The notes beneath the pieces were generated by a model. It did not search any database. It saw only the letters and a list, made by a program, of their open reading frames with translations, and was not told the DNA's origin. This document shows, piece after piece, positions 3,676 through 26,616 of a stretch of 64,000 nucleotides of DNA. The DNA is taken from sequence record OR836606.1; one strand, 5' to 3'. Every line of letters begins with the position of its first letter. The stretch's first letter is position 1. The translations under genes were made by a program, and so were the position numbers.

Positions 3676-4884
3676 TTATTGAACTACAATCAAATTCTTT
3701 TTAGCACGAGTGATAGCTGTGTATAATGACTTAAATCTATCTTTACTCATATTTTCACTAAATACTATTACATTATCAAATTCAGAACCTTGAGATTTAT
3801 GAATAGTGATTCCGTATGCAAAATTAAATGGATTTACTTTCATACCAAAATCAGACATCTCAGTTACATATCGTTTCTTAAATATTTTATTAATTTCATT
3901 ATCTCTGTGTCTTAGATCAAATAATTCTTGTTGATCTCCAATAGTGCCTTCAAAAATTAAATCATCATAATATATTCTACTAAATCTTTCCTTTTCAAAA
4001 CCTTTAGGTTTAAAATCCATTTGAGTTGATTTAGTCATAGGTTTTTTCTTACCAGATCTAGTTATATTTCCAATTAGACCGTTAGTTAAATATTGAGTTA
4101 TATCACCTTCATTAACTACTTTAGACCAATTATTTTTTAAACACATAATTTTTTCATCCTCTTTAGGGAATGGATTATTTTCAACATCGATATTTAATAT
4201 TTGACTTCTATAGAATCTATTAAATTGATCTACCGTTCTATTATAGCTCATTAAAACTTGATCTGCATTCTTATACATGTCTAAAGTTAATTCATCTGAA
4301 GTAATTACATGTACATTATCTCCATAAGAACCGTATTCTAAATCTTTACCATTACGAACTAAATTAGCTGCAACAAGTATAGGATTATCTAATGACTGTC
4401 TTACTGGTTCATCTAAGAATATGTCAGGTTTATCTAATAATTCATTTCTTCCTGATAAGCTTTTAAGCTGTGCGGGGTCTCCTAAACAAAGTATAGGTAT
4501 ACCAAAACTTTGAATTTCTTCTATCATCTTCATAGGAACCATTGAAACTTCGTCTATGATTATTAACTTAATATCACTTGGTAACTCATCTTTTAATGTA
4601 AAATTTACTTTACCAGTTTTCTCATCCATAAAATGATTATAAATAGTTCTATGGATTGTAGTTGCATTTAATCCTCTTTTGACTAACACACCTGCAGCCA
4701 TTCCTGTATATGCTATAAAAGAAACATTAGCTTCATGTAAACCTAAAGAATCGATTATTTTAGTCATTGTATAGGACTTCCCACTTCCAGCGATGCCTGA
4801 TAATACAAAAGGTCTATGACTATCATTATTATACCATTCTTTAGCTAATCTTAACCCTTCTTCTTGTTTTTTATTTAACCCCAT
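3676..4884 (-). CDS. dda: Dda/RecD-like SF1B ATP-dependent DNA helicase
   Basis: GIAGSGKS Walker A, DEVSMV, GDPAQL, ITIHKSQGSEFDNV, LYTAITRAKK; GAGGTG SD favours ATG at 4884 over the track start 4902. Confidence 0.9.
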   Translation of the reverse strand: MGLNKKQEEGLRLAKEWYNNDSHRPFVLSGIAGSGKSYTMTKIIDSLGLHEANVSFIAYTGMAAGVLVKRGLNATTIHRTIYNHFMDEKTGKVNFTLKDELPSDIKLIIIDEVSMVPMKMIEEIQSFGIPILCLGDPAQLKSLSGRNELLDKPDIFLDEPVRQSLDNPILVAANLVRNGKDLEYGSYGDNVHVITSDELTLDMYKNADQVLMSYNRTVDQFNRFYRSQILNIDVENNPFPKEDEKIMCLKNNWSKVVNEGDITQYLTNGLIGNITRSGKKKPMTKSTQMDFKPKGFEKERFSRIYYDDLIFEGTIGDQQELFDLRHRDNEINKIFKKRYVTEMSDFGMKVNPFNFAYGITIHKSQGSEFDNVIVFSENMSKDRFKSLYTAITRAKKNLIVVQ

Positions 4885-5228
4885 TATCTTAATACACCTC
4901 AATCAAATTTATTATATTTTTAAACGTCATTGATCTTTAATTAATATAAATTGGTTATTCAGATTTTATAAAATTTTTACTTATAAATTTTTAAAATTCT
5001 GTACTAATATATTACTTATATTAGTAAGTAATTATAAATTTAATAATTAGTATTAATATAAATATTATTAATAAATATATTTTTAATTAATAAAATATAT
5101 TAATACTTTGGATCATAGAAAACTCTAATAATAAAAATTTATAAACTTCAATTAATAATATAAATATATATTATTTTAATGGAGTTAGTAAGAATATTAA
5201 CTTCAAATAATTTTATATAAGGAGAGAT

Positions 5229-6119
5229 TTGGATATGGCAATTACAAGAAAGAAAATTACAAAAGAAAAAGAGGATTTAACTGTATTAGAATCGGCTAAG
5301 ATCAAATTATCAGAGGAACAAGGATATGAGGGAGATACAATTACATTTGATATCGAAACTATTCCAGAGAAATATGACAGAAAGAATTTAGTTTTAATCC
5401 CTGAAGATGATAATGTTATTAAGATTAATTATGATAAAAAAGAAATTTTCATCAATTCAGATGAACTTAAAGATGTTGAAATTAATCTTAAAGATATTCC
5501 AACAGAAAGTTCTTATGATAAAGTAACTGTAACAGCTTCAGGTATAAATCCAGAAAAAGCAAAAGAAATTAAGCAAAAAGAAACTAAGCAAGAAGAAGTT
5601 AAAGAAGAAGTTAAGAATCCAGTATTAAAAGAGAAAAAACAAAGTACAAAAGCTAAATCAAATCAGAAGGTTGGTAAAAAGAAAATGACTAATAAAAAGA
5701 AGAATGTTAAAAAATTCAGTGAGAAATCTTATACTAAAGAAGAACTTATTAACGACTTATTATTAAATCTAGAAGAGAATGAATATTCTAAAAAAGAATT
5801 AAGTGATATTATTAATAAAATTGATGAACTTAGAGAAAATGCATTAGTTAAAGGTAAAACAGTAACTATGAAAAATGTACATTTCTCTCGTAAATTAGTT
5901 AAAGGTCGTATTCATAACGCTAAAATGGAAACAATTAAACAAGCATCATTTGTACCACCTCATATTGCTATGGTAGCTAAAGTGGAAAATGAAGATAAAA
6001 AAGTAATTAAAGGTGAAGAAATTAATAAAGATAACTTTAAAACAGATGATGGTAAAGATATTAAAGTTTCAGATGTCAATGCCAAATATGAAGAAGAATA
6101 CAAAAAACGTTTTAGATAA
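5229..6119 (+). CDS. Two-domain protein: N-terminal beta-rich (Ig-like?) domain plus C-terminal HU/IHF-like DNA-binding domain
   Basis: TKEELINDL...SKKELSDII...ENALVKGKTVTM...FSRK...GRIHN follows the HU pattern; AAGGAG SD (start 5229 or 5235). Confidence 0.55.
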   Translation: MDMAITRKKITKEKEDLTVLESAKIKLSEEQGYEGDTITFDIETIPEKYDRKNLVLIPEDDNVIKINYDKKEIFINSDELKDVEINLKDIPTESSYDKVTVTASGINPEKAKEIKQKETKQEEVKEEVKNPVLKEKKQSTKAKSNQKVGKKKMTNKKKNVKKFSEKSYTKEELINDLLLNLEENEYSKKELSDIINKIDELRENALVKGKTVTMKNVHFSRKLVKGRIHNAKMETIKQASFVPPHIAMVAKVENEDKKVIKGEEINKDNFKTDDGKDIKVSDVNAKYEEEYKKRFR

Positions 6120-6133
6120 GACCAATTAAAAAT

Positions 6134-6802
6134 ATGGGGGAATTGTCAATGAAACATTTTTATAAGAAAAGAGAATCTATTGAATTAGATTTAAAAGCTA
6201 TGTATACAAATCATGTAGATGTAATTTCTCGTTACGATTTTGGTGATGAGGAGTTACATCAAATGGTAGATAGATTCATACCTCAAATAGTTGAAGAAAT
6301 TCATGAATTCAATTATGAAATAAATCAAATTACTAATAATCCTGAATGCAATCAATCTCGAAAGTTTGAATATATTAATAATGCATCAAAAGAATTATTA
6401 GATATTGTCCTTTACTTAATATCTATCAATTCAACATTATTAAGTAAGTATATGGACAATAAATTTCTTCAAAAAGATATTATCAATTATAATGAGACTC
6501 TCCTTTTAGCTAACGATAAAAGTATTAATGATTATAATAGACTTAATGGTATTAAAATGAAATTGAATGAATATTTAGTTGAATATATGGGATTGATTAG
6601 ACGTTCATTACCTAATAGAAAATATCATCAAGATAAAGAAGAAATTAGTCAAGAAGAACAAAATAAAATAGTGAATAATTCATTTTATATCACTCACAAA
6701 ATGATCGTATCTTTATTAGATACATTATTTACTAATTTAGTTTATACTAAAAATCTAGATGATGTATTGAATAAAATACAAGATGTAGTTAAAAATAAAT
6801 AA
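6134..6802 (+). CDS. All-alpha NTP pyrophosphohydrolase (MazG/dimeric dUTPase-like)
   Basis: IVEEIHEF...KELLDIVLYL matches the EExxE...ExxD metal-binding pattern; real start possibly 6149. Confidence 0.6.
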   Translation: MGELSMKHFYKKRESIELDLKAMYTNHVDVISRYDFGDEELHQMVDRFIPQIVEEIHEFNYEINQITNNPECNQSRKFEYINNASKELLDIVLYLISINSTLLSKYMDNKFLQKDIINYNETLLLANDKSINDYNRLNGIKMKLNEYLVEYMGLIRRSLPNRKYHQDKEEISQEEQNKIVNNSFYITHKMIVSLLDTLFTNLVYTKNLDDVLNKIQDVVKNK

Positions 6803-6807
6803 TATTA

Positions 6808-6868
6808 ATTCATCCTAACACATTTAGTCCTTAACTGGATTATTTGTGTTAGGATGAATATTTTATTT
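6808..6868 (+). terminator. Intrinsic terminator
   Basis: ATTCATCCTAACACA / TGTGTTAGGATGAAT 15-bp stem plus long T-run. Confidence 0.8.
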
Positions 6869-6908
6869 TTTTTTTATCTTTTAATTTAATCTATATGATT
6901 CTGATAGA

Positions 6909-6920
6909 AACATATATGTA
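6909..6920 (+). promoter_or_regulatory. AR9-type late promoter (AACA-N6-TA)
   Basis: AACA TATATG TA just upstream of the 1981-aa tail gene. Confidence 0.6.
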
Positions 6921-6954
6921 TTAAGAAAATCATGTTAGGGGGGAATTATGAAAC

Positions 6955-9900
6955 TTGGCTAAAAATAATAAAAATAAAAAGAATATTAGACAATTAGAAA
7001 ATAACAATAAATCAACTGTTATTAAAAATTCTTCTAAAAATACCGGCCGTATTCTTTTTAATGCGTTTATAAAATCTAACCCGTCATTAGATGCTATAGT
7101 GGGAGATTCAGGTTTAAAATTATTTAACAATGATGAAAGAAGATTAAAAAATTTTTCTGAAGTTAAAGGTTCTACTAATGATCTAATAAAAACTTTAAAA
7201 AATAAATCTAATGAAAACGATCTTTTTTCAAGTAGTAATGAAAAATTATCTAATGAAAAACCTGAATATGAATCAGTAACAGAATATATTGATAATCCTG
7301 ATGGAACTAAATCTGAAATTGTTAGTCTGTCAGATAAAAAGAAATCTAAAATAACAAATTCACCTCTAATAGCGATGAATAATTTGGCTGAGATAAATCA
7401 AAGAGGATTTGTTGGAACGAATATTGCAATGAACAATTATTCTCTATCAATACAAGCAACTAATAGCCTTATATATTCAGCCTTATCAAATTTAAGTACA
7501 ATACAAAATGGTATATATCAAAATACTCTAATGGAAGAAAATACTAAAAGAGATAAACAATCTAAATTACAATCCATAATAAATGGAAATATTAGTTTAT
7601 TAAAATATTTAGATGAGAAAACTAATCCTGAAAATTTATTAATGGGTATGATGACCGGAGAACAACTTAAATCAATGTTAATGGGAGTAGCTAAAAACCC
7701 TATTGAATTTGCTGCAACTCAAGGAGCTAAAATTGCATTTAATAAACTTCTATATGGTGATATTGGCGGGTATGATCCTGAAGGTAGTAATAAAAACATA
7801 TTTAACAGATTGAATAAAAGATTTGATCCTCAAAATATAGGATCTATGCTTATTAATAGAAATCTTGTTGAAGATAATAAACTTACTAAAGGTTTAGAAA
7901 GATTAACCGGTAATGATAATAAGTATATATCTAATTTAGGAAATGCTCTTTCAGATAGACTAAATCAATTAAAAGAAGAAGTATTGGGTGACGGTAAGGG
8001 CAGTATTTCTCTAAAAAATAAACGTAAAAAAGATACTCCGGTTCAATTTGATATGGAATCTCATACGTCTATTAATAAAGTTATACCGGACTTCTTATCT
8101 AGAATTCAAGGTAATTTGATAGCTAAAAAAGAAGGTCGTTCAGGCGGATTAGCAGATAATGCTGAATTAGGTAGTATTTATAATTATCGAAAAGGTATTT
8201 GGGAAAATCGAAGATCTGCTAAGAAAAATGCATTAGATGAAATTAAATCAGAATCTTTATTCAATTTTAAAGATACTTATTTAGGTAAAGAATTATTATC
8301 TAAATTAGATAATGATGAAGAAAGAACTAAAGAAGTTTTAACTGAATTAACTAAAATAGACAAACCTATTAAAGAAATTTCTAAACTTAAAGAGATAATT
8401 AATCAAAAAAATATAAATGTTAGCACTGAATCATTATCGGAAGTGTTTGAAAAGAATTCAGCTAAATTCAATACTGATTTATTCAATATTAAGAAATCTA
8501 TTTCAAATACTCTTGATAAAAAAGATAATTCAAGAATAATGTCATTTACTGAAATAGAAGGTTTAAATAAATCTAATTCAACATATTCTAGATCTAACAA
8601 TGATGATGATATTAATCAGATTAAAGATTTTGGCAATATTAACTGGGAAAATAGTGATTTAGAAGAAATTAAAAATATTTTCTTAGAAATAGAAAGAAAA
8701 TTAAATAATGACTTCAGTAGCGGTAATATTAATAATAATAAAGAATTTATTAATAATAAAGTCGATACAATCAATAATATTATAGACAAAGGCAAAATTT
8801 TCTCTGTTTTAAGTGGGAATAATGAATCTCATGCTTCTGTAATGGATAAGTTAAATAGTCTTTCTAATGCAGTTAATAAAGCTAAAGAATATAAAGAAAA
8901 TCCTACAAGTGCTATTAAAGATATAGCCTCTTCCTTAACTAACAGTGTCAGTCTTCCTCAAGAAAACAACCAATTAATGCGAAATAATGAATATCAATAT
9001 CAAAATGTAAATCATCAATCTAGCATTATAGATAATAATCCAGTAATGGATTTAATGAATAATATTCCCGTCTTAAATAGTTTAACGATTAATAACAATG
9101 AAGCTAATAAAGATGCTTACATTAAAGAACCAAGTAAAACTATAGATGATTTAACCAAAGAAGAAAAAGAAAAGAAAGCTAAAAGCACGATAATTGATTT
9201 AGTTAACACTGCTTTTGGTAATGACCCAACTATTAAAAAAGATATGGAAGATTCCCAAGATACTGGAGCTTTAGAAAGAATGAAACAAGGTCTTTCAACT
9301 GCTGATGCTGGAAAACTTGGAGAAAATGTTATGTCTACAATGACTGGGTCTAGTAAGAAAGAAATTGCTGAATCTATTAGAGGTAATATAAACTTTGGAA
9401 AAGGCGGAGAAGCTGAGAAATCTATTGGCACTAAAAAGATGATGAACGGAATGCTTGATTTTAGTAAAATGGGACCAGTTTTATTTGCTGGAACTTCTGC
9501 AGCTGTATTAGGTTCATTAATGAAAGGTAGAAATAGTAAGAAAGATTTAGAAGTCAGTGAAAAAGGATTTTTATCATCTGCTGGAGGATTTTTAGGTAAC
9601 GCCGCTATGCTAGGTGCTGGAGGATTCTTGGCTGCTAAATTTGGTCCTAAACTATTATCTAAATTATTACCGGGTGGAGTAGGTAAATTCTTCACTAGTA
9701 TGCCTGGTATGTTAGGTAAAATAGGCGGCGGAATTAAAAATATAGCTGGGAAATTTGGATTAGGAAAATTATTTAGAGGTATTAAAGGTGCTCCTAAAAA
9801 AATAGGTAACGTATTTAAAGGTATTGGAAAATTTGCTAAAGATAAACTACCTACTGTTAAGTCTTTAGGTAAAATGGTTATAGGTAAAGGTGCAGGATTG

Positions 9901-12900
9901 GTTAAAAAGGGATTAAGTACCGGTAAAACTATAGGTAAAGTAGCTAAAAGTGGTATATCTAAGATATTTAATAAAAAGAATGCTTCAGCTGCTACTAAAG
10001 GATTAAGCAAATTTGCTTCTAAAGGTTTTAACAGAGCTAAATCTATCGGTAAAGGTTTATTTGGTGGTTCTAAGAAACTTGGAGGGAAAGCTTTTGGTGC
10101 TATAGGTAAAGCTAAAAATAAATTATTTGGTAAAGGTGCAGCGAAAGCTGGAGGAAAATTTGCATTAAAGGCAGGATTGAAAACAGCATTACCATTCATA
10201 CCATTTGTTGGACCAGTGATTGGTGCAGCGATGTGGGCTCCTGATATCATTAAGACTATTAAACACCCTATAGAATCATTAAAACATCCAATTAAAACAT
10301 TGGGCAGCTTTTTCGGAATTGGAGAACATCCAGGTGATAAAATAGAAGATGAAGCTAAAAGTAAAGAAGAAAAACATACTGAAGATGAAACAGGTTTAGG
10401 ACGACTAATATTAAGCACGACTAAGCTAATGTTTAGAGCTTCCCCTATGTTCCCACTAGCTAAAGTTGGAGGGAATATGTTTAAAACAGTTACTGATAAT
10501 AAAATGCAATCCGGTCCAAAAGCTGAAGAAAATATTCAAAAAGATATATTCATGAGCACTCCTTTAGGTAGTTTATATCAAATTGCTAAAGGCGGAATCG
10601 ATTTCTCTAAATATGGTAAAGGTGAAATTGGAGATTGGTTCAGTCGTTTCTTAGTTAAAATGGAAGAAATGGTTGTTGCAATGTCTAAAATGAGAAATTC
10701 TAGTGGTTCTGGAAGTTCAAGTGGTAGTAGCTCAGGTGGAGATCAGCTTAAAGGAGATGAAATAGAAATAGATAAAAATGCTCCTTCTATTACTTCACAA
10801 GGTATTTTAAATAAAATACCTGATGACGCTGCCGGCGCTTGGTTGAAGAAACATGAGTTCTGGCAACCATTTGGTAATTATCAAGGATTAGCATTTAATG
10901 GAAGCTCAAAACACTGGGGTATAGATATTGGTATGCCTACAGGAACTGATGTATTGGCAATTGTACCGGGTACTGTTTCTAATGTCTTCGTTGATCATGG
11001 CGGAGGTAATATAATAGAGATTAAAAATGGCGGAATATACACTTGGTATATGCATAATAGTAAAATAATTGCCAAAAAAGGTGACAAAGTCCAAGTAGGT
11101 CAAAAAATCTCAGTTTCAGGTAATACAGGAGCTCAAACAACCGCACCTCACCTTCACTTCCAAGTCATGAAAGGTAGACCTTCAAATGAAACTGCTATAG
11201 ATCCAGCACCATATGTTTTCGCAAAAGTTAAAGGAAAAGGCGGAGACAAAGATGATGATAAAAAATCTGATAGTAGTGCTAAAAAAAGTAAGAAGAAAAA
11301 AGGTGATGATGGCGGTGGACACTCTGTTATCGGTGATTTAAATTCACATTCCATTCAGAGGGATATTAAAAGAAAAAGAGCTCAAGATATTAAAAATAGA
11401 AAAATCCAAGATCGCGTTATTAGACGAGAAGAACAAAGCTTAGCTAAGGCTGAAAGAGAAGACGCATTAAATGTTAAAAAAGTAGCCAAAAAAGTTAATA
11501 ATATATTCAAGAAATTAAAAGATTTAAAAGGAACTAAAGGTACACTTAAATCTTCAAATCAATTTAATAAAGTATTAATTGTTGGTGATGATACAATTAA
11601 TGATGCATCCGTAGATCTTAAAAAGAAAATTAAAGGTGCTAAAGTCGAATCTTCTAATGGTAAAGCATATAGTTTTGGACCATCATCAGGTAGAAAAATA
11701 CTTCAAGAAAATGTTTCTGAATATAATAAGAAAGGTATAGCTATTGTTATACAGCTAGGTATGAATGGTGGATTATCGACAGGAGAAGTTACAGAAATAC
11801 AACATATGTATGATAAAGCACATGTATACTTTGTGACTAATGCAATTAGTAAAAAATTAGAGAATGATACAGAACTATCTAATGCAATAGATGATCTGAA
11901 TGATTCATTAAAGATGTCTGCTGAAAATATAATCGAATGGGATAAAAAAGCATCTGAATCATTGTTTAATGAAGACGGAATCACTCTTAATAATAGAGGT
12001 AGAATGATCTTTGTTGATCTTATTAAATTGTATATAAACCCATATATTGGCGGAGGCGGTAGCTCTGATGAAGAAAAAATAGATAAGGATATAGATAAAG
12101 AAGAATCTAAAGCTGAGAAGAAAAAATCTAAAGAAAAAGATGAAGAGGAAAATAATGAAGAAACTTCAGATGATGAAGATAAAGGCTCTTCTGCCGAAGG
12201 ATCTTCTGAGTATAGTTTTAAAAATGGTACTTGGTACGGATCTATAACTGGAAGAGATGATAGAAGAATGGATGAAGAAGAACAAGAGGAATTAAATGAT
12301 CGTTTAATGAAACGATACGCTAAAATTTATGGCATTGATTACGAAGAAGCTAAAAGAATTGATCAAGAACAACAAGAAAAGAAAAAATCTGAAGCAGGAA
12401 ACAAAAAGTCTGAATCAAGTGCATCAAGTTCTAATAGCGATAGTTCTTCTGAAAATTCATCAAATAATTCTAGTTCCTCAGCATCAACTTCTAAACCAAA
12501 TAGCAATGTAAATATCGGAAACCCTCCTATATTCCAATTACCTACATTAGCTAACAGCGGATTTTCCAATATTAATAGAGGTAATAATACTTTTAATAAT
12601 CAAGGTAGTAAAAATACTCAAACAATTAATAATAATTATCAAACCGGACAAAGTGGTATTATTAATAATGAAAAAGTAAATAAAGAATTTATAAAAGGTA
12701 AGAATAGAGTAACTAACCATTATAATAAAATTGTAAATAATCATAAAAATTCTAAAATTGAAAATGGCAATTCTGGTTATACTTATGATTATGAAAAATT
12801 ATGGTATTCAGATGATTTAGTAAGAATGTTAGCTAATATTGATAGAAACACATTAGAGTCTACTAAAGAATTAGATCGTTTATTAGAAGAATTGAAATAG
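6955..12900 (+). CDS. Giant tail-associated (tape-measure-like) lysin with M23 peptidase and a degenerate OatA-like SGNH domain
   Basis: M23 motifs HWGID, YMHNS, HLHF (about 10900-11200); SGNH-like block 11566-12040; G/K/A-rich amphipathic segment; GGGGGA SD with TTG start. Confidence 0.8.
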   Translation: MAKNNKNKKNIRQLENNNKSTVIKNSSKNTGRILFNAFIKSNPSLDAIVGDSGLKLFNNDERRLKNFSEVKGSTNDLIKTLKNKSNENDLFSSSNEKLSNEKPEYESVTEYIDNPDGTKSEIVSLSDKKKSKITNSPLIAMNNLAEINQRGFVGTNIAMNNYSLSIQATNSLIYSALSNLSTIQNGIYQNTLMEENTKRDKQSKLQSIINGNISLLKYLDEKTNPENLLMGMMTGEQLKSMLMGVAKNPIEFAATQGAKIAFNKLLYGDIGGYDPEGSNKNIFNRLNKRFDPQNIGSMLINRNLVEDNKLTKGLERLTGNDNKYISNLGNALSDRLNQLKEEVLGDGKGSISLKNKRKKDTPVQFDMESHTSINKVIPDFLSRIQGNLIAKKEGRSGGLADNAELGSIYNYRKGIWENRRSAKKNALDEIKSESLFNFKDTYLGKELLSKLDNDEERTKEVLTELTKIDKPIKEISKLKEIINQKNINVSTESLSEVFEKNSAKFNTDLFNIKKSISNTLDKKDNSRIMSFTEIEGLNKSNSTYSRSNNDDDINQIKDFGNINWENSDLEEIKNIFLEIERKLNNDFSSGNINNNKEFINNKVDTINNIIDKGKIFSVLSGNNESHASVMDKLNSLSNAVNKAKEYKENPTSAIKDIASSLTNSVSLPQENNQLMRNNEYQYQNVNHQSSIIDNNPVMDLMNNIPVLNSLTINNNEANKDAYIKEPSKTIDDLTKEEKEKKAKSTIIDLVNTAFGNDPTIKKDMEDSQDTGALERMKQGLSTADAGKLGENVMSTMTGSSKKEIAESIRGNINFGKGGEAEKSIGTKKMMNGMLDFSKMGPVLFAGTSAAVLGSLMKGRNSKKDLEVSEKGFLSSAGGFLGNAAMLGAGGFLAAKFGPKLLSKLLPGGVGKFFTSMPGMLGKIGGGIKNIAGKFGLGKLFRGIKGAPKKIGNVFKGIGKFAKDKLPTVKSLGKMVIGKGAGLVKKGLSTGKTIGKVAKSGISKIFNKKNASAATKGLSKFASKGFNRAKSIGKGLFGGSKKLGGKAFGAIGKAKNKLFGKGAAKAGGKFALKAGLKTALPFIPFVGPVIGAAMWAPDIIKTIKHPIESLKHPIKTLGSFFGIGEHPGDKIEDEAKSKEEKHTEDETGLGRLILSTTKLMFRASPMFPLAKVGGNMFKTVTDNKMQSGPKAEENIQKDIFMSTPLGSLYQIAKGGIDFSKYGKGEIGDWFSRFLVKMEEMVVAMSKMRNSSGSGSSSGSSSGGDQLKGDEIEIDKNAPSITSQGILNKIPDDAAGAWLKKHEFWQPFGNYQGLAFNGSSKHWGIDIGMPTGTDVLAIVPGTVSNVFVDHGGGNIIEIKNGGIYTWYMHNSKIIAKKGDKVQVGQKISVSGNTGAQTTAPHLHFQVMKGRPSNETAIDPAPYVFAKVKGKGGDKDDDKKSDSSAKKSKKKKGDDGGGHSVIGDLNSHSIQRDIKRKRAQDIKNRKIQDRVIRREEQSLAKAEREDALNVKKVAKKVNNIFKKLKDLKGTKGTLKSSNQFNKVLIVGDDTINDASVDLKKKIKGAKVESSNGKAYSFGPSSGRKILQENVSEYNKKGIAIVIQLGMNGGLSTGEVTEIQHMYDKAHVYFVTNAISKKLENDTELSNAIDDLNDSLKMSAENIIEWDKKASESLFNEDGITLNNRGRMIFVDLIKLYINPYIGGGGSSDEEKIDKDIDKEESKAEKKKSKEKDEEENNEETSDDEDKGSSAEGSSEYSFKNGTWYGSITGRDDRRMDEEEQEELNDRLMKRYAKIYGIDYEEAKRIDQEQQEKKKSEAGNKKSESSASSSNSDSSSENSSNNSSSSASTSKPNSNVNIGNPPIFQLPTLANSGFSNINRGNNTFNNQGSKNTQTINNNYQTGQSGIINNEKVNKEFIKGKNRVTNHYNKIVNNHKNSKIENGNSGYTYDYEKLWYSDDLVRMLANIDRNTLESTKELDRLLEELK

Positions 12901-12923
12901 ATAACAGGAGGTGGAACTAATAA

Positions 12924-15900
12924 TTGGCTAGAAATAAAAAATTTAACACTAGTAAGATAGAGAAGGAGTTTAGAAATAACTCCTCCTCTAAATCTTCTAG
13001 AAAATATATAGATACTGAATTTAATAAAAATTTAAATAATATAAATTCTAACGATATGAAACGTATGATGGATCAAAACAATCCATTAAAAGCAGTTAAA
13101 GAATTAAAGAATAAAAAGAAAAAGCAACTACAAAAGATAAGTGAATCAACTAGAGATTTATCTAAAGAAGCTTTAGAATCTACTAAAAATACCTTTAAAA
13201 CTGGAGAAACAATTCAAGATAAAGGATCATTAAAAAACTTCAATAGTATGGGTATGGATTTCAGTGGAGATTTTGAAGATTTTAGTTTTGATGATAGTTT
13301 TTCAGATATAGATTCCGACATAGATAATTCTTTAGATGATGGAGATTTCAAATTTGATGACTTTGATAAGGAAGATGATAATAAATCTAAAATAGTGTCT
13401 TCCACAACAATTATCAATAATGACGGTTCTTCTGCTAAATCTACAGCACTATTAACTTCTTCTGTTTCTAATCTTTCTCAAATAAACACTACTGGATTTA
13501 CTTCTATGATTAATAACCTTAATTTAATGAGGGAAGCTAATGATAATATTAGAGAAAGTATGTTCCAGAACTTAAACGGATTAATTCAAACTAGTAATGC
13601 TATTAGACAAAATACTAAAATTAAAAATATATCCGAAATAAAGAATAGTAATTCATTAGAAGACTTATTTTTATCAAATATAACTTTATCAAATATATTA
13701 GAAGGATCTCAAGAAGAAGGATTTAAAGATAAAGCTAAAGACTTCATCAAAAAACAAGGAACAGAATTACTTAAAGAAGTTATTGGTTCTAAAAAACAAG
13801 GAATTAAAAGTTCAGGTTTAGTTGATTTAGCTAAAGGTAAAGCTTTTGATTTCCTTAATAATGAAGATACTTTTATAGAGAAAGCGGTTGGCAAATTTGC
13901 TAATAAAAAACTTAGTCCTTTTAGAGATAATGATAATGGTACTAAACAAAGGAAAAGAGATAAAAGAAGAGATGATTTACTTGAAGACGTTAAATTAGGT
14001 AAAAGCAAGTTAATTGATAAAATATTTGATAATGTAACTGGCGGTATATCAACTGCTAATAAAAAAGATAGAAATCAAAAAGTTGCTTTTGATGTGGAAA
14101 CTCATAATACAATTAATACAGTTATCCCTGGCTATTTATCTAAAATAGTTGGTTTAACTTCAGAAGATGGTCAAGAAATCCACTATGATTATGATTCAGG
14201 TTCTTTTAAAACTTCCAAATCTATTAAAAATGATATAGAAAAAAGAGTTAATAAAACTATCAAAGAATCTAGTTTTACTAAAGAATTTGAAAATATGGCT
14301 TCTGAAATGGGTATTGATCTGTTTAATAATGAAAGTAATAAAAATAAAGCCACATCTAAAATTAAAGAAATTATTTCTAGAAATATTAACAAAAGTGATG
14401 AACTTGATCAAATTAAATCTAATGACCCAAATGACCCATTTAATATTCTTCTAGATAAAATATTTAATGATAAAGAAGCTAAAACTAGTTTAACTAAAAC
14501 TAGAATGCAATTAAATAAAGAATCTAAAGATATTAAGAGAAAATTATCGGGTAGTTCTATAAATGCTCTTAATGACAAGAGTAAAAGAAAAGGTACTTCT
14601 AAAAATATTACATCCAAATTAAGTAATGGAAATAAAAGTGGTATTCTTAGTACTAACAAAGATACTTTATACGATAATATTAACTTTAATATCGTTAATA
14701 GAGATATAAGTGAGATCAAAAAGATTGTTTCTAGAATAAATAATAAAATACCTGAGAAAAGATATAATAATTCTAACGATAGTAAGTCAAGTGACTTTAT
14801 TAATAATACAAATCAATCTAATGATAATATTTCCAGAGAAATAGATCCTAGAGAGCAAACTTTAAACCAAAATACTTCTTCTAGATCAAATCAGAATAGA
14901 GAATATGATAATACTAAAAATGGAGATAATGGATCTACTATTATTCCTAATGAACAAATTTTAGAAGATGGACAAACAAAATCGTCTGAAAGTTCAGATA
15001 ATAAAGATTTTATAGATAGAATAGAAGAAGCTCAAGATCTTATCGATAGCAATAAATATGTTAAAGAGAAATTTGACAAATATAAAAATAAAGGTAAAAA
15101 CTTTGCTAAAGAAAAAATAGGTAAATTGTCCAATACTAAATTAGGTAGTAAAATAACTAGTATGGGCGGTGCTTTAACTGGTAAATTTGCTGCTGGCGGT
15201 GCTTTAATGGCAGGTGCAGGTAGTAGACTTAAAGGAAAACTTAAGGCTAGAGCTACTAGAATGGCTGCTGGAAAAGGTACTAAAAAAGCTATAGGTAAAG
15301 GATTACTTAAAGCAGGTTCTAAAGTAGGTGCTCGTGTTGGGTTAAATGCTATTCCCGTAGTTGGACAAATTGCATCATTAGCATTAGCCGGTCCAGATAT
15401 TATTAGAACAATAGCCAATCCAATAGAATCGTTAAAACATCCAATTAAAACATTAGGTAGTATTATTGGTTTCAATGACCACCCTTCTAAAACTAAAAAA
15501 GAACAAGAAAAGTTAGATTCAACTCAACCTGGCGGAGAAAATTTTGCAATTGATCCTTTAGTTGATACTAAAATGAATGGATCTATAGATAAATCTTCAA
15601 TTATTGGAGATTTTATTAAAGATAATCCATTATTAGCTTCCACTCCTTTATTAGGATTAGCAGGAATGGGTTTATATAAATCAATTGTAAAACCGGCATT
15701 CGGTTTAGGTATGAATATGGTTCAAAAAACTACCGGTATGGCTAAGAGTTTTGGAGATCAAACTGATATGGCTATGGAAGAGAAAACAAGTGGCTTTGGC
15801 GGTTTGATTAAAAAAGTTGTCGGCGGTGCTTCTATGTTAATGATGGCACCTTTGGCATTGGCTGGTAAAGGTTTAAGTAATTTAACTGGTATGACTTCAA

Positions 15901-18685: not shown

Positions 18686-20245
18686 ATGACAATTTATTAT
18701 ATGTCATATCCGCATATATTATTTCAGAAATTAAAAAAGGATGTGAAATCTAAATTGCCTAATGAAAAAGATATAAAAGAACAAATTGAAAAAGCTGAGA
18801 AAAAAGCCAAAGAAAAAGAAATGGAAAAGCTTAATATTAGAGATGAAGATATAGCATTAATACCTCAGCCTGATGAAGGTAAAGGAGATTACGATTTCCA
18901 TGAATATGATCCTAGTCAAAATGATTTAGGTGTATTTAAAGACGCTACAGGTAATACTCGTGACATTTCTGAGTATGGAGCTTCTGATAAAACTAAATTG
19001 AGAAATGTTAAAGGGGAGTTAGATGTATTTGGAATGCCTATGTACTATTCTAGCTTAGATGATCCTAATAGAAGAATATATAAAAGAACATTTGAGTTAG
19101 ATTTGCCTTTAGTATTTATAATGCCAGGTATGCCTAAATTAAATGGTAAACTATTTGGTAAACCGGGTGAAGGAAAATTATGGAGTTTTGGAGAAGGTTT
19201 AGACAGATTAGCAAATACTACTGCTGGTTTAGTCGGTATAGGTAATACTAAAGATGGGCGTATGGTTAGTTTTGAACCTAAAATGAGTGAGTACTATAAA
19301 TACGTGCAAACTATGGGAAGTCAATTACATGCTTCTATGGGTTTAAAAGGTTCATTTGATTTGGGTGGCTCTCTAGATGATAAAAACTATGGATTAGCTT
19401 ATTATGCTGATAAAGCTACTAGTGTATCTGAATCTGGAATGCATGAATATAATCAATCTGATATAGCTTCTCAAATTAATAATAAAAACCAAGAAATTCG
19501 TGAAGAAAAAGAAATGGCTCGTATTGGAGGAGCTTCTATTTTAGGTAAAATTACAAGATCTATTAAAGATAGTATCAATGATATGGTTGCAAGTATGCCA
19601 GTATTGGGTGGTATAGTTGGTAACTTTATGGAAAACCTAGATGGTGCGTCTATGTATTATCCTGATATTTGGATGAATTCAACTTTTGACCGTACTTATA
19701 ATTTAGAATTTAAATTCTATAGTGCGTATGGAGATCCTCAATCTATTTTTGAAAATGTATACTTGCCATTTATGTCATTATTAGTATTAGCTTTACCTTT
19801 ACAAGATTCTATTTTCTCATATAAACAACCATTCATTGTTAGAGCAAATTGTCCTGGTAGATTTGAATGCCATACAGGTATTATAACATCAATGAATATA
19901 GTTCGTGGAGAAGAAGGTACATGGACAGCAGATGGTTTCCCTAGAGAAATAACAGTTTCACTAAATGTAAGAGATATGTACCCTAACTTAATGGCATCAA
20001 AATCATTCCAACGTATGAAATTTAATACAGGTTTAATTTCTTATATTGATTGTTTAGCAGGTATTAGAAGAGATCAACTATCAATTATAGATAAAGCTCA
20101 AATTAATATGCAAAATCAATATTCAAGAAGTATGCAAGTGTTAAAAGGAAGAGTATTTAAACAGCAAATAGATGATACAATTTATGGTTATAAATCTCAA
20201 ACAAACCCTCATCCTAACAGTGCTATTGGAAGTACATTATCATAA
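18686..20245 (+). CDS. Putative baseplate hub / tail-tube initiator protein
   Basis: C-terminal YNLEFKF...LALP...IITSMNIVRG...DGFPREITVSL pattern typical of tube-fold baseplate proteins; follows the tail lysins. Confidence 0.45.
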   Translation: MTIYYMSYPHILFQKLKKDVKSKLPNEKDIKEQIEKAEKKAKEKEMEKLNIRDEDIALIPQPDEGKGDYDFHEYDPSQNDLGVFKDATGNTRDISEYGASDKTKLRNVKGELDVFGMPMYYSSLDDPNRRIYKRTFELDLPLVFIMPGMPKLNGKLFGKPGEGKLWSFGEGLDRLANTTAGLVGIGNTKDGRMVSFEPKMSEYYKYVQTMGSQLHASMGLKGSFDLGGSLDDKNYGLAYYADKATSVSESGMHEYNQSDIASQINNKNQEIREEKEMARIGGASILGKITRSIKDSINDMVASMPVLGGIVGNFMENLDGASMYYPDIWMNSTFDRTYNLEFKFYSAYGDPQSIFENVYLPFMSLLVLALPLQDSIFSYKQPFIVRANCPGRFECHTGIITSMNIVRGEEGTWTADGFPREITVSLNVRDMYPNLMASKSFQRMKFNTGLISYIDCLAGIRRDQLSIIDKAQINMQNQYSRSMQVLKGRVFKQQIDDTIYGYKSQTNPHPNSAIGSTLS

Positions 20246-23463: not shown

Positions 23464-26400
23464 TTATTTTTCAACATTAATGTCAATGAAGATACGTTCA
23501 ATAACATTATTGAATTTAACAGAAATTTTAATACGTACAATACGTTGAGATTTATCATATTCATCTGCGCTAACTTCAGCTTGAATAGTTTCACAGCTAC
23601 GGTTAGATACATAACGAGTAAGATAAGCATTCAACTCTGTACTCATAATTGAACGAGTTTCATCATCATTTAATTCAAATTGGTAATCAGAAACAAGAGT
23701 TTCTGCATCACGTTTAATTTGGTTTAATGTAAAGATATTATTCAAGTTAGATAATGGACCATCAGATTTAATAGAAGTCATCTGTGCACCAAATTTAGTT
23801 TTATCAATATCTTTTTCAATGTAGTTGATTTTAGAAGTATAAAGTTTTTCTTTATAAGGTTCATTAGGAGCCCAAGATAAAGCTTTATGGCCTTCAACTA
23901 AACCACGTCTAGGACCCGCAATTGGGAAATGTAAACCAGAGTTAACAGCTTGATAAGGAATCATTGAAGCTAAACGATAAGTTGGAGTGAAACGAATGTC
24001 TCTACCAGTGTACTCATCATAATAAGTTAAATCTTGAGAGTAAATAGCTGTATACTCAGAAGAAACAGCAAATTCTTCTTTTCTCCATCTAATTGCATCT
24101 TCAGGACTAACTGGATAACGATCAGTAACTGTGTCGGCTAAGAATACAAAGTCTTTACGAACATTTTTAGCTAATTCAGAGATAGCGAACTTAACTTCAT
24201 TAGAATAACGAGCATCAAGTACAACATCAAATGGATAAGCTTTAGTGTTTGTAATTTCTTCGTCTACTAAACCTTTATAAGCTTTAATTAATTCACGATT
24301 AACTGCATTTTTACGATCCTTATATGAAATATCTTCAGCATATGAGAAGTCGCCATCAGAACCGAATAAGAATTTAACTGGACTAGAAATATCAATAAGG
24401 TTTGTATTGAAGTATTTAGAGTTAGCCTTATTCAAGTTAGCAACTGCTAATTCAATATTTTGATGAGCGTTTAATGTAATATCTCTTTCTGTATAGTTAG
24501 AACGAGTTTGAATCATTTCGTCAATATTTTTACGGAAGATAGAAATATCATAATAGATTGTATTAACCGCAATACGGACTGCACGAGCAACTTTGTATAC
24601 AGAAGCCACTGATACAGCTCTATTAATTAAATCTACTAATTGATTAGCAATTTCATTACAAGTTACGAATACTTCTTCACGGTTAACAGCGTTATCTTCC
24701 ATTAATCCTAATGTAATATCGTCAACTAACATTTGTTTGTCAGCCAATGAATTTAACATGGATTCTGGAGAAACTAAGTCACGTTCTGAATCTTCATCGT
24801 CACCATCAGGAGTAGTGTTAATAAAATTAATTGCTTCTTCAGGGAGTCCTTCACGTACTGCTGGCATTAAGTTATCTATTACATAACGTAATTCTGTTTC
24901 AGTATCATTTAATACTTTAGCCATTCCTTCTAAGTTAGTTACAGATTTCATACCAATACGTAATTCAGCGATATCATTTGTAATATCTAAGATATTAGAT
25001 TTATGTTGAATACCGAAGATACGGATTTGGTCTTTCTGAGCTAATACATCACGTAATTCTTTAACATCAGCTTGATATTTAGGATTTGAAGAAATACCTG
25101 AATTAGATTTATAAACTAATTCGTAAGCAGCATTAAGTTTATTACCATTATCTAAGAATTCATTTAATAATAAAGAACCAATTTCTTCTGTTCCAGAAAG
25201 AACTGCAGAAAGGTTTTCTTCATTTGAATCTTCAAAATAAGTGTTATAATCTTGAACTAAACGTTCAGCTGCTCCAGCAGGTTTACCACCGAAATTAATT
25301 TCAGAAGGTTTGAATTTTCCAGCTAATTCTTCTTCAACTGCTTCTGCATCATTAATATCTGCAGATACATCTTCTTGATTTAATTTTTCAGAAACTAAAT
25401 TATCTTTAATAATTTTAGGTAAGTTACCTGTATCATCATCAAATAAACCATTAGATGGCACAATAATTTTATTCAATAATGATTTAAATTCTGTAAAATT
25501 ATCAGAACGTAAAGTTTTGTATTGATCTCTCATATAAGAAAGACGGTCTGAATCTGTAACGAAAGTTTTTTCACGCATACCATTATCTAATGAAATTAAT
25601 GCGTTTTCAACTGGATCATTAAAATCAGGTTTATTCAATACGTGTTTACCACTAATAGTTACTGGTAGACCTTTGTTATTATAACGGTGTAAAGCAATAT
25701 GAACATCTTCCGTTTGTTTAGTTTCTTCTGAATAGAAAGTTTCAGGAGTTCCATCAATACTAATTTTAGATTTACCAGAAATAACATCAATACTTGCAGG
25801 ATGTACATTAGGGTTAATTTCTTTAGCTAGATTTTGGAAGTTTTCTAGATTAAATTTGATGTTAATGTATTTAGAATAACGATTAACAACTTCTTCAATA
25901 AACATTGATTCACCGGTATCTGAAATCGAATCTGGATCAAATGTAACTAAGAATGGACCATCAATTACGTTAACGTTACCAAAATCATCAAATTCAAGAA
26001 CTTCTAAGTTGTAAACACGTTCAGTACGACCACTAGTGTCATAAGAAGTATTTAGAGTTAAACGAATACCTAAATCATTATAAGATTCACCACGACCATT
26101 AGGATAAGCTAAAAGTAAGAAGTTATTGTTATAACCATCTACTGTTTGCTCATTACCACGGTCTAAAGTAATTTCATTAACTAATTCTTCAATATTTCTA
26201 TTATTTTTCTTAACAAATGCAATTGTTGGACGAATTTTGACATCGTCAATTTTAACCAATTCATTTGATTCTGTTAAAACTTTTTTACCATCTTTTTGTA
26301 CTCTACTTTGTACGTTTAATATAGCATGTGAATAAGTTGCATTTTGCGGTAGAATACGTAATACATAAGCTTGACCACCAGAACGTAACCAGTTCACGAT

Positions 26401-26616
26401 GTTATAAGCAGATTGACCGTATTTCGTATAGTTTGGTTCACCATATTTAAAAATAAATTCTTCTTCAGTACCTACAAAATCAATAACTCCATCTTTACCT
26501 TTTTCAAAAGTGTCTGCAGCAAATAATGTTACTGGACCTTCAGCTGTTTGATAACTATTTTGATAAGAGTTGATTTGTGTTTGTACAGAAGGATGGAGAT
26601 ACATAAAGTCTGCCAT
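23464..26616 (-). CDS. Contractile tail sheath protein (1050 aa)
   Basis: N-terminal EEEFIFKYGEP...LRSGGQAYVLR; C-terminal AGPRRG, INYIE, VKFNNVIERIFIDINVE; GAAAGGAAGG SD. Confidence 0.9.
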   Translation of the reverse strand: MADFMYLHPSVQTQINSYQNSYQTAEGPVTLFAADTFEKGKDGVIDFVGTEEEFIFKYGEPNYTKYGQSAYNIVNWLRSGGQAYVLRILPQNATYSHAILNVQSRVQKDGKKVLTESNELVKIDDVKIRPTIAFVKKNNRNIEELVNEITLDRGNEQTVDGYNNNFLLLAYPNGRGESYNDLGIRLTLNTSYDTSGRTERVYNLEVLEFDDFGNVNVIDGPFLVTFDPDSISDTGESMFIEEVVNRYSKYINIKFNLENFQNLAKEINPNVHPASIDVISGKSKISIDGTPETFYSEETKQTEDVHIALHRYNNKGLPVTISGKHVLNKPDFNDPVENALISLDNGMREKTFVTDSDRLSYMRDQYKTLRSDNFTEFKSLLNKIIVPSNGLFDDDTGNLPKIIKDNLVSEKLNQEDVSADINDAEAVEEELAGKFKPSEINFGGKPAGAAERLVQDYNTYFEDSNEENLSAVLSGTEEIGSLLLNEFLDNGNKLNAAYELVYKSNSGISSNPKYQADVKELRDVLAQKDQIRIFGIQHKSNILDITNDIAELRIGMKSVTNLEGMAKVLNDTETELRYVIDNLMPAVREGLPEEAINFINTTPDGDDEDSERDLVSPESMLNSLADKQMLVDDITLGLMEDNAVNREEVFVTCNEIANQLVDLINRAVSVASVYKVARAVRIAVNTIYYDISIFRKNIDEMIQTRSNYTERDITLNAHQNIELAVANLNKANSKYFNTNLIDISSPVKFLFGSDGDFSYAEDISYKDRKNAVNRELIKAYKGLVDEEITNTKAYPFDVVLDARYSNEVKFAISELAKNVRKDFVFLADTVTDRYPVSPEDAIRWRKEEFAVSSEYTAIYSQDLTYYDEYTGRDIRFTPTYRLASMIPYQAVNSGLHFPIAGPRRGLVEGHKALSWAPNEPYKEKLYTSKINYIEKDIDKTKFGAQMTSIKSDGPLSNLNNIFTLNQIKRDAETLVSDYQFELNDDETRSIMSTELNAYLTRYVSNRSCETIQAEVSADEYDKSQRIVRIKISVKFNNVIERIFIDINVEK

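Follow-up and report, generated by a model that had tools for sequence, protein, structure and literature searches.

O-acetylation of N-acetylmuramic acid (MurNAc) by OatA is the main cause of lysozyme resistance in Staphylococcus aureus, and how phages cope with this modification is, to our knowledge, poorly understood. This study concerns a 64,000-nucleotide (nt) stretch of sequence record OR836606.1 (here called the window), from Staphylococcus phage LY01, and within it a domain of the giant tail protein P0001 that resembles the SGNH domain at the C terminus of S. aureus OatA (structures 6VJP and 6WN9) but lacks its catalytic serine and histidine. SGNH esterase domains have been described before on phage tail proteins, and lysozyme and M23 domains on tape-measure or tail proteins. 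The C-terminal domain of phi11 Gp44 (Tal), which resembles carbohydrate esterase 2WAO (PMC4876445), and the O-antigen deacetylating tailspikes G7C gp63.1 and epsilon15 gp20 (bioRxiv 10.64898/2026.07.31.742079) are, like the LY01 domain, SGNH modules carried on tail proteins that attack the host envelope. Those domains keep their catalytic residues and belong to other SGNH subfamilies, whereas the LY01 domain is OatA-type, catalytically dead, and part of a tape-measure-like protein. Like phi29 gp13 and other virion-associated hydrolases, the LY01 tail brings a lysozyme and an M23 endopeptidase; unlike in phi29 gp13, these activities are split over two paralogs of ~2000 amino acids (aa) with two globular “beads” each, and one of the four beads is a pseudo-enzyme. 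Three points are new here: staphylococcal jumbo phages have an OatA-type SGNH module in their tape-measure-like protein; among close relatives, this module has split into active-looking forms and forms that are dead but under selection; and it is kin to wall proteins of conjugative elements. A full-text literature search found no description of an SGNH domain in a phage tape-measure protein, and the preprint on MarsHill, Madawaska, and Machias and the paper on DC4 mention only M23, PF18013, and PF00877, with no SGNH domain.

The SGNH segment lies in frame within the 1981-aa open reading frame (ORF) of P0001, and all of the motifs quoted from it in an earlier note on this DNA, which had likened the segment to OatA, are present. 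A phmmer comparison matched the domain to S. aureus OatA (6WN9) with an E value of 6e-9 and 24% identity. An AlphaFold2 model built on a 12-sequence alignment (mean predicted local distance difference test score [pLDDT], 83.6; predicted template modeling score [pTM], 0.81) has five strands alternating with helices, as in the three-layer alpha/beta/alpha SGNH fold. The best matches of this model were 6WN9 and 6VJP both in Foldseek (E, 3e-8; template modeling [TM] score, 0.75-0.77) and in VIA-align (Z, 19.8; root mean square deviation, 1.9 Å over 147 of 155 residues). VIA-align ranked S. aureus OatA above S. pneumoniae OatA (Z, 17.3) and the PatB peptidoglycan O-acetyltransferases, and almost all of the top 50 structural neighbors were SGNH/GDSL proteins (Z, 14.2 to 19.8). 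With the SGNH fold found and OatA as the best match, the likeness drawn in the note proved correct. Family models were less informative: Peptidase_M23 was the sole Pfam-A family found in P0001, with no SGNH/GDSL match even at E values up to 1. Pfam likewise found no AT3 (acyltransferase-3) domain in the 1981-aa protein, whereas a true OatA-type match (P0008) carries PF01757. LY01, MarsHill, and PB50 hold one copy each of the OatA-like domain; no second copy was found in any of these three phages. PF13472 and PF19040 yielded no second copy either, which is a weak negative, as Pfam misses the known SGNH copy too.

The LY01 domain and OatA have in common a compact ~155-aa fold, the Block I Gly-Asp, the Block III Asn, the Block V Asp, and an Asp four residues after the catalytic Ser position (Ser+4); the Block II Gly appears to be kept as well. 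The alignment pairs GDS of OatA with GDD of LY01, GTNG with GMNG, and DGIH with DGIT. Of the residues required for SGNH catalysis, the serine nucleophile and the His of the Block V Asp-x-x-His pair are absent, and the Block III oxyanion-hole Asn is present; the losses of Ser and His that the earlier note had pointed out are thus real, in the alignments as well as in the codons themselves (Table 1). For Block II, OatA has the Gly of VGRQ where LY01 has that of NGK, an assignment that we infer in a part of the model that is weak (residues 45 to 49; pLDDT, <50). Because replacement of the Ser or of the oxyanion Asn abolishes activity in SGNH enzymes (PMC9487903), the dead version should be unable to hydrolyze. 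Sequencing error or recent decay was considered and rejected: each substitution needs at least 2 base changes and is shared in kind across phages that are 43 to 56% identical here. The Ser+4 residue is Asp in the dead clade described below and Gly in the MarsHill-type and conjugative-element domains. Its counterpart in S. aureus OatA is the Block I Asp, which we take to be Asp457 (in the numbering Ser453/Asp457/His578). The Block I Asp of OatA orders water, favors transfer over hydrolysis, and restrains turnover; its replacement raises transfer to water almost 4-fold and transfer to carbohydrate acceptors even more (PMC9487903).

When 1.8 billion cluster representatives were scanned exhaustively with HMMER, only 16 matches to the domain had E values up to 1e-3, one of which, the Cna_B repeat protein P0007, was spurious. 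Other searches added little: a word-index protein search with the domain region found the Machias orthologue only, a scan of IMG/VR with the phage alignment found nothing, a scan of GTDB genomes and a plasmid search with the conjugative-element domain found nothing, and the LY01 domain matched nothing in a plasmid search except two distant acyltransferases of Bacillus. We aligned 25 domains, from 10 jumbo phages, S. aureus OatA, and 14 matches of the exhaustive scan. Twenty of them keep GDS, G[TS]N, and Asp...His, and five (LY01, PB50, Machias, AH12, and SA1) do not, so that retention of Ser and His among the related phages is divided: five sister phages keep both residues, and five, including LY01, have neither. 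The residues at the Ser position, before the Block III Asn, and at the His position are, respectively, D, M, and T in LY01; E, L, and M in PB50, Machias, and AH12; and E, I, and M in SA1. No Ser or His that might stand in is conserved elsewhere in these five, and their conservation peaks at Block III and the loop that follows it (QLG-x-NGGLSTGE). The five sister phages (MarsHill, Madawaska, S6, PALS_2, and DC4) hold in the same slot, between M23 and the common C-terminal module, a domain that looks active and whose protein sequence is identical in all five. This MarsHill-type domain is 36% identical to that of LY01 but keeps GDS, GTNG, and the Block V Asp...His, and it carries Ser at the Block II Gly position; the same Gly-to-Ser change occurs in the active S. 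pneumoniae OatA (PMC9487903). The identity of the MarsHill-type cassette is no sign of unusual conservation, as MarsHill and DC4 are 97% identical over the entire 3.5-kb region.

In a maximum-likelihood tree of the SGNH domain (20 rows), the five dead domains form one clade (support, 99/97), which joins the MarsHill type (85/72, so that this sister relation is moderately supported) and then two large conjugative-element proteins (98/95); the next branch out is a metagenomic protein with M23, SGNH, and NlpC/P60 domains (96/91). Because the outgroups of the dead clade look active, the simplest reading is that catalysis was lost once, in an active ancestor, within a branch of the OatA-C family that belongs to mobile elements. 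On the other side of the tree, S. aureus OatA stands among AT3-fused proteins. The “captured” OatA copy of the earlier note is not supported: recent capture of host oatA conflicts with the low identity and with the tree, in which the LY01 domain does not group with OatA orthologues but falls in a separate, well-supported mobile-element clade (96/91, 98/95). Unlike OatA, a host membrane enzyme, the LY01 domain stands in a phage tail protein. Full host oatA genes, with an AT3 part and a C-terminal SGNH part equal to 6WN9/6VJP residue for residue over the aligned stretch, do occur in two entries labeled as unverified, Staphylococcus phages SA 1306 Kay and SA 1298 Kay (OR844999.1, 78215-84646; OR850378.1), but these contigs are probably host DNA, not phage.

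For the dead domain as such, the selection test was made on a PB50-type member of the dead clade, not on the LY01 version. Between PB50 and AH12, the 477-nt dead domain has 9 nt differences, all 9 of them synonymous (nonsynonymous substitutions per site [dN], 0; synonymous substitutions per site [dS], 0.10). Assuming that about three-quarters of random changes are nonsynonymous, we estimate that 9 silent changes in 9 would arise by chance about once in 10^5 to 10^6. The same pair of phages differs at 12 nt in M23, with 2 aa changes, and at 12 nt in the linker between M23 and SGNH, with 5 aa changes; this linker is the fastest-evolving segment. Between PB50 and AH12 the dead domain is thus constrained at least as much as the adjoining M23, and since all differences are silent, it is maintained, at least in the PB50 lineage. 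With its homology to an enzyme, the loss of Ser and His, and purifying selection in the PB50 type, it has the properties expected of a pseudo-enzyme.

The LY01 version sits in a recombinant segment of its gene. Outside aa ~1261 to 1740, P0001 is mostly 82 to 98% identical to its MarsHill counterpart per 60-aa window, with dips to 63% (aa 661 to 720) and 60% (aa 1801 to 1860); inside, identity to MarsHill falls to 30 to 53%, whereas identity to PB50 is 83 to 90% over M23 and 37 to 70% over SGNH. A PB50-like cassette in MarsHill-like surroundings means that LY01 is a MarsHill-like phage with a cassette of M23 and dead SGNH acquired by recombination from an unsampled member of the dead clade. The partner lysin of LY01, P0002, is MarsHill-like throughout (85% overall; lysozyme domain, 83%). 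In infecting S. aureus, LY01 has the MarsHill-type lysozyme at its disposal and yet no active SGNH domain.

The protein context of the domain is wall degrading. About 120 aa upstream of it in P0001 is an M23 peptidase that looks active, with its zinc and catalytic motifs (HxxxD and HxH, here HWGID and HLH) intact, and whose closest solved relatives are the glycyl-glycine endopeptidases S. aureus LytM and lysostaphin (E, 1e-27 to 1e-21). The earlier note had placed an M23 peptidase beside the SGNH segment and a lysozyme in the partner protein, and both are there: the family matches are strong (E, 7e-23 for M23 and 1e-36 for the PF18013 lysozyme), and P0002 carries an NlpC/P60 domain in addition. 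The lysozyme domain of P0002 is homologous to the N-terminal lysozyme domain of phi29 gp13 (E, 3e-7). By BLASTP, P0001 and P0002 align over three collinear segments (E, 3e-38, 3e-20, and 7e-10), namely, an N-terminal region (identity, 25% over ~500 aa), a central motif (47%, 101 aa), and a C-terminal module (45%, 241 aa). The slot between the last two is filled in each paralog by two globular beads, with Gly/Ser-rich or charged linkers; these beads are M23 and then SGNH in P0001 and lysozyme and then NlpC/P60 in P0002. Together the pair would have on offer three active-looking wall-cutting domains and one pseudo-enzyme.

Both proteins are “hypothetical proteins” in the LY01 record and tape measure protein and tail lysin, respectively, in sister records. 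Homologs of P0001 are labeled tape measure protein in MarsHill, PB50, SA1, and PALS_2, and the PHROG tape-measure families that match P0001 all do so via its M23 part. Location in the tail module together with a wall-degrading M23 gives P0001 the features of a virion-associated peptidoglycan hydrolase. The first possible start codon of both giant ORFs (6955 and 12924) is TTG, in agreement with the coordinates of the public record. The features of the region are collected in Table 1.

Table 1. Features of the P0001-P0002 region of LY01; positions are those of the window
Feature	Position	Strand	Basis or remark
Tape-measure-like tail protein gene P0001, 1981 aa, WRM43543.1	6955..12900	+	ORF list, translation; “hypothetical protein” in OR836606.1
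Recombinant cassette, aa ~1261-1740 (M23, linker, and dead SGNH)	10735..12174	+	Sliding 60-aa identity; boundaries to ~60 aa
Peptidase M23, aa 1319-1417 of P0001	10909..11205	+	Pfam PF01551, E 7.3e-23
Lys/Asp/Glu-rich M23-SGNH linker, ~120 aa	11206..11565	+	Translation; without family match
OatA-C-like SGNH domain (putative pseudo-esterase), aa ~1538-1695 of P0001	11566..12040	+	phmmer, AlphaFold2, Foldseek, VIA-align
Block I Ser position, Asp1546, codon gat	11590-11592	+	Lost; codon read directly
Ser+4 position, Asp1550	11602..11604	+	Aligns with Block I Asp of S. aureus OatA
Residue before Block III Asn, Met (GMNG)	11761-11763	+	Replaces Thr/Ser of all active-looking members
Block III oxyanion-hole Asn, Asn1604, codon aat	11764-11766	+	Kept; invariant in 25/25 sequences
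Block V Asp, Asp1674, codon gac	11974-11976	+	Kept
Block V His position, Thr1677, codon act	11983-11985	+	Lost
Tail lysin P0002, 1900 aa, paralogous to P0001	12924..18626	+	BLASTP, Pfam
Phage tail lysozyme, aa 1207-1350 of P0002	16542..16973	+	PF18013, E 1.1e-36
NlpC/P60 (cysteine peptidase/amidase), aa 1449-1534 of P0002	17268..17525	+	PF00877, E 2.2e-9; PF05382, E 1.3e-6
Virion structural protein gene	18686-20245		Just downstream of the two giant genes
Tail sheath gene	23464-26616	-	Nearby, downstream of P0001/P0002

We propose, with a probability of roughly 0.45, that the dead SGNH domain is a pseudo-esterase kept as a noncatalytic wall-binding module. As the second bead after M23 in one of the two ~2000-aa paralogs, it would keep the extruded tail-tip protein, and with it the Gly-Gly endopeptidase, attached to the staphylococcal wall while this is being penetrated. 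An SGNH domain that stands free on a tail protein lacks an AT3 domain as acetyl donor, so hydrolysis is the only plausible chemistry of the active relatives, which would then be peptidoglycan O-acetyl esterases; the ancestral active domain may have cleared 6-O-acetyl-MurNAc and thereby opened staphylococcal glycan strands to a lysozyme-type partner. Retention of the fold, the oxyanion Asn, the Block V Asp, and the conserved Block III loop under selection is consistent with binding to the wall, as are the LytM/lysostaphin-type M23, the paralog with lysozyme and NlpC/P60, and the nearby tail sheath gene. A separate metagenomic protein, moreover, links M23 and NlpC/P60 in one chain with an SGNH domain from the same clade that looks active. 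O-acetyl groups can matter to phage attachment in this host: adsorption of phi11 falls to 50% on an S. aureus oatA mutant, indicating that they contribute to attachment (PMC4876445).

Several observations weigh against wall binding. Between LY01 and PB50 the SGNH domain evolves faster than M23 (dN/dS, 0.36 versus 0.08), and the deep divergence within the dead clade is high (43 to 56% identity); both would suit a less exacting role, perhaps only a structural one. In SA1 the Block II Gly is missing as well. Asp or Glu together with Met, Leu, or Ile puts charge and bulk at the acetyl site, so that acetyl groups may no longer fit the pocket. A carboxylate and a hydrophobic residue could equally suit an unacetylated sugar or a cation, and for this reason we assign no acetyl preference. 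For the active relatives, too, the role as esterases is only inferred. Finally, the P0001 orthologue is not among the 15 virion proteins reported for the sister phage DC4 by shallow, low-coverage mass spectrometry, so the virion location of P0001 rests on annotation and gene context.

A structural role can also be put forward as an explanation in its own right. The domain may be a relic that binds no wall component and serves as a folded spacer or assembly element, contributing length, folding, packing in the tail tube, or contact with another tail protein. Among the deep pairs of LY01, PB50, and SA1, dN/dS by the method of Nei and Gojobori (NG86) is 0.36 to 0.50, that is, below 1 with dS near saturation, and similar to the 0.2 to 0.4 of the scaffold parts of the protein (the N-terminal part and the transmembrane and Gly-rich parts). 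Each of three active-site positions has been replaced, and purifying selection of the kind seen between PB50 and AH12 would be expected too of a domain that merely must fold. The pairing in LY01 of a MarsHill-like lysozyme partner with a dead domain also implies that the enzymatic function of SGNH is dispensable. Against this, the former oxyanion loop is the best-conserved part of the domain in the dead clade, which also keeps the Asn, the Block V Asp, and the Block I GD; the replacement of Ser is always a carboxylate (D, E, and E), not a random residue; and the domain is flanked on either side by flexible, Gly-rich linkers, which points to a free bead more than to a packed element. We consider such a relic unlikely but a serious contender to wall binding.

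The recurring carboxylate can be read in another way, namely, that the pocket has been repurposed and that Asp1545, Asp1546, Asp1550, and Asp1674, beside Asn1604, bind a cation or a positively charged wall group rather than O-acetyl-MurNAc. Candidate ligands would be a divalent metal, the amine of the D-alanyl esters on teichoic acids, or a free amine in the peptide stem or cross-bridge, and the adjoining M23 acts on the peptide cross-bridge. The presence of D or E at the Ser position in all three dead lineages and of Asp instead of Gly at Ser+4 would suit this proposal, and the OatA domain has been crystallized with Zn bound (6WN9 entry title). The clustering of these side chains is, however, assumed from OatA active-site geometry on the basis of aligned residue identities, and we know of no SGNH-derived cation site of a comparable kind. 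We therefore regard a repurposed pocket as rather improbable. Residual catalysis with a carboxylate as nucleophile or general base in place of Ser/His is very improbable: although the acidic residue at the nucleophile position is conserved, the oxyanion Asn and Block V Asp are kept, and recent purifying selection is strong, the loss of activity on Ser or Asn replacement noted above speaks against it, the dead clade has no conserved His or other general base (Thr or the chemically inert Met stands at the His position), and we know of no SGNH-fold enzyme with an Asp or Glu nucleophile.

Wall binding by the dead domain invites a wider and more speculative view, which we think unlikely as a whole: sibling staphylococcal jumbo phages might hold interchangeable “eraser” (active) and “reader” (dead) variants of a single OatA-type module. 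The active form would remove the O-acetyl mark behind the lysozyme resistance of S. aureus peptidoglycan, the dead form would recognize wall glycan, possibly the O-acetyl mark itself, as an anchoring cue for the M23 endopeptidase, and recombination would swap the cassette between backbones, as in LY01, so as to match the wall state of the host. If true, this would be a natural conversion of an esterase to a lectin on a phage penetration device and a ready-made probe of peptidoglycan O-acetylation. Short of that, it matters that the wall-piercing tail protein of staphylococcal jumbo phages bears an OatA-type SGNH module. Because active-looking and dead but selected versions occur in near-isogenic backbones, they form a clean experimental pair, with which one can ask whether the active form de-O-acetylates peptidoglycan for the phage lysozyme and what role the pseudo-esterase plays on the tail tip. 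Were wall binding borne out, engineered lysins could be targeted with the domain, or wall acetylation probed with it.

The nearest nonphage relatives of the module are membrane proteins of conjugative elements (P0004 and P0006/P0028; metagenomic), with 33 to 38% identity and clade support of 98/95. Like the LY01 protein, they belong to a machine that crosses a thick wall, and genes for a MobL relaxase and a type IV secretion system (T4SS) coupling protein adjoin theirs. Unlike that of LY01, their SGNH domains look active (GDS, GTNG, and GVH), stand N-terminally behind a signal-like segment, and have no M23 beside them. To judge from this gene neighborhood, the proteins look like a wall-modifying component of a Gram-positive conjugation system, and the kinship suggests that the SGNH module may be a common tool of DNA-transfer machines that cross thick Gram-positive walls. 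The proteins encoded at 10001-14989 of an 80-kb contig (ERZ26881239) and in the P0004 cluster are 1518 to 1662 aa long, with a signal-like segment, the SGNH domain, several membrane segments, and a very long coiled-coil tail; their genes lie between those for an AAA ATPase and the T4SS coupling protein, near the MobL relaxase gene. The contig has a G+C content of 37%, and its relaxase is 42% identical to a Staphylococcus plasmid MobL.

The metagenomic protein of the next branch, encoded at 4475-8158 of scaffold ERZ28568169, is a single chain of 1227 aa with a disordered N terminus, a membrane segment, M23, an active-looking SGNH domain, a region of ~250 aa, and NlpC/P60. It thus has the toolkit of the LY01 pair in one chain. 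The genes next to that of the 1227-aa protein have no Pfam matches. The middle region of protein P0017 showed only a nonsignificant resemblance to a muramidase (E, 0.02 to 0.75).

The hint of a Staphylococcus-type host in the earlier note agrees with the origin of the DNA: the 11.7 kb tested is 100% identical to LY01, a phage of 258.9 kb with S. aureus YZ4 as its host and a pig farm as its source. Its closest relatives are the S. aureus jumbo myophages MarsHill, Madawaska, S6, PALS_2, DC4, Machias, PB50, AH12, and SA1. The G+C content of the window is ~25 to 30%. A 433-aa frame on the opposite strand (9117-10418, minus) lies entirely within the Gly/Lys/Ala-rich part of P0001 that contains membrane segments and is probably a by-product of composition bias, not a gene.

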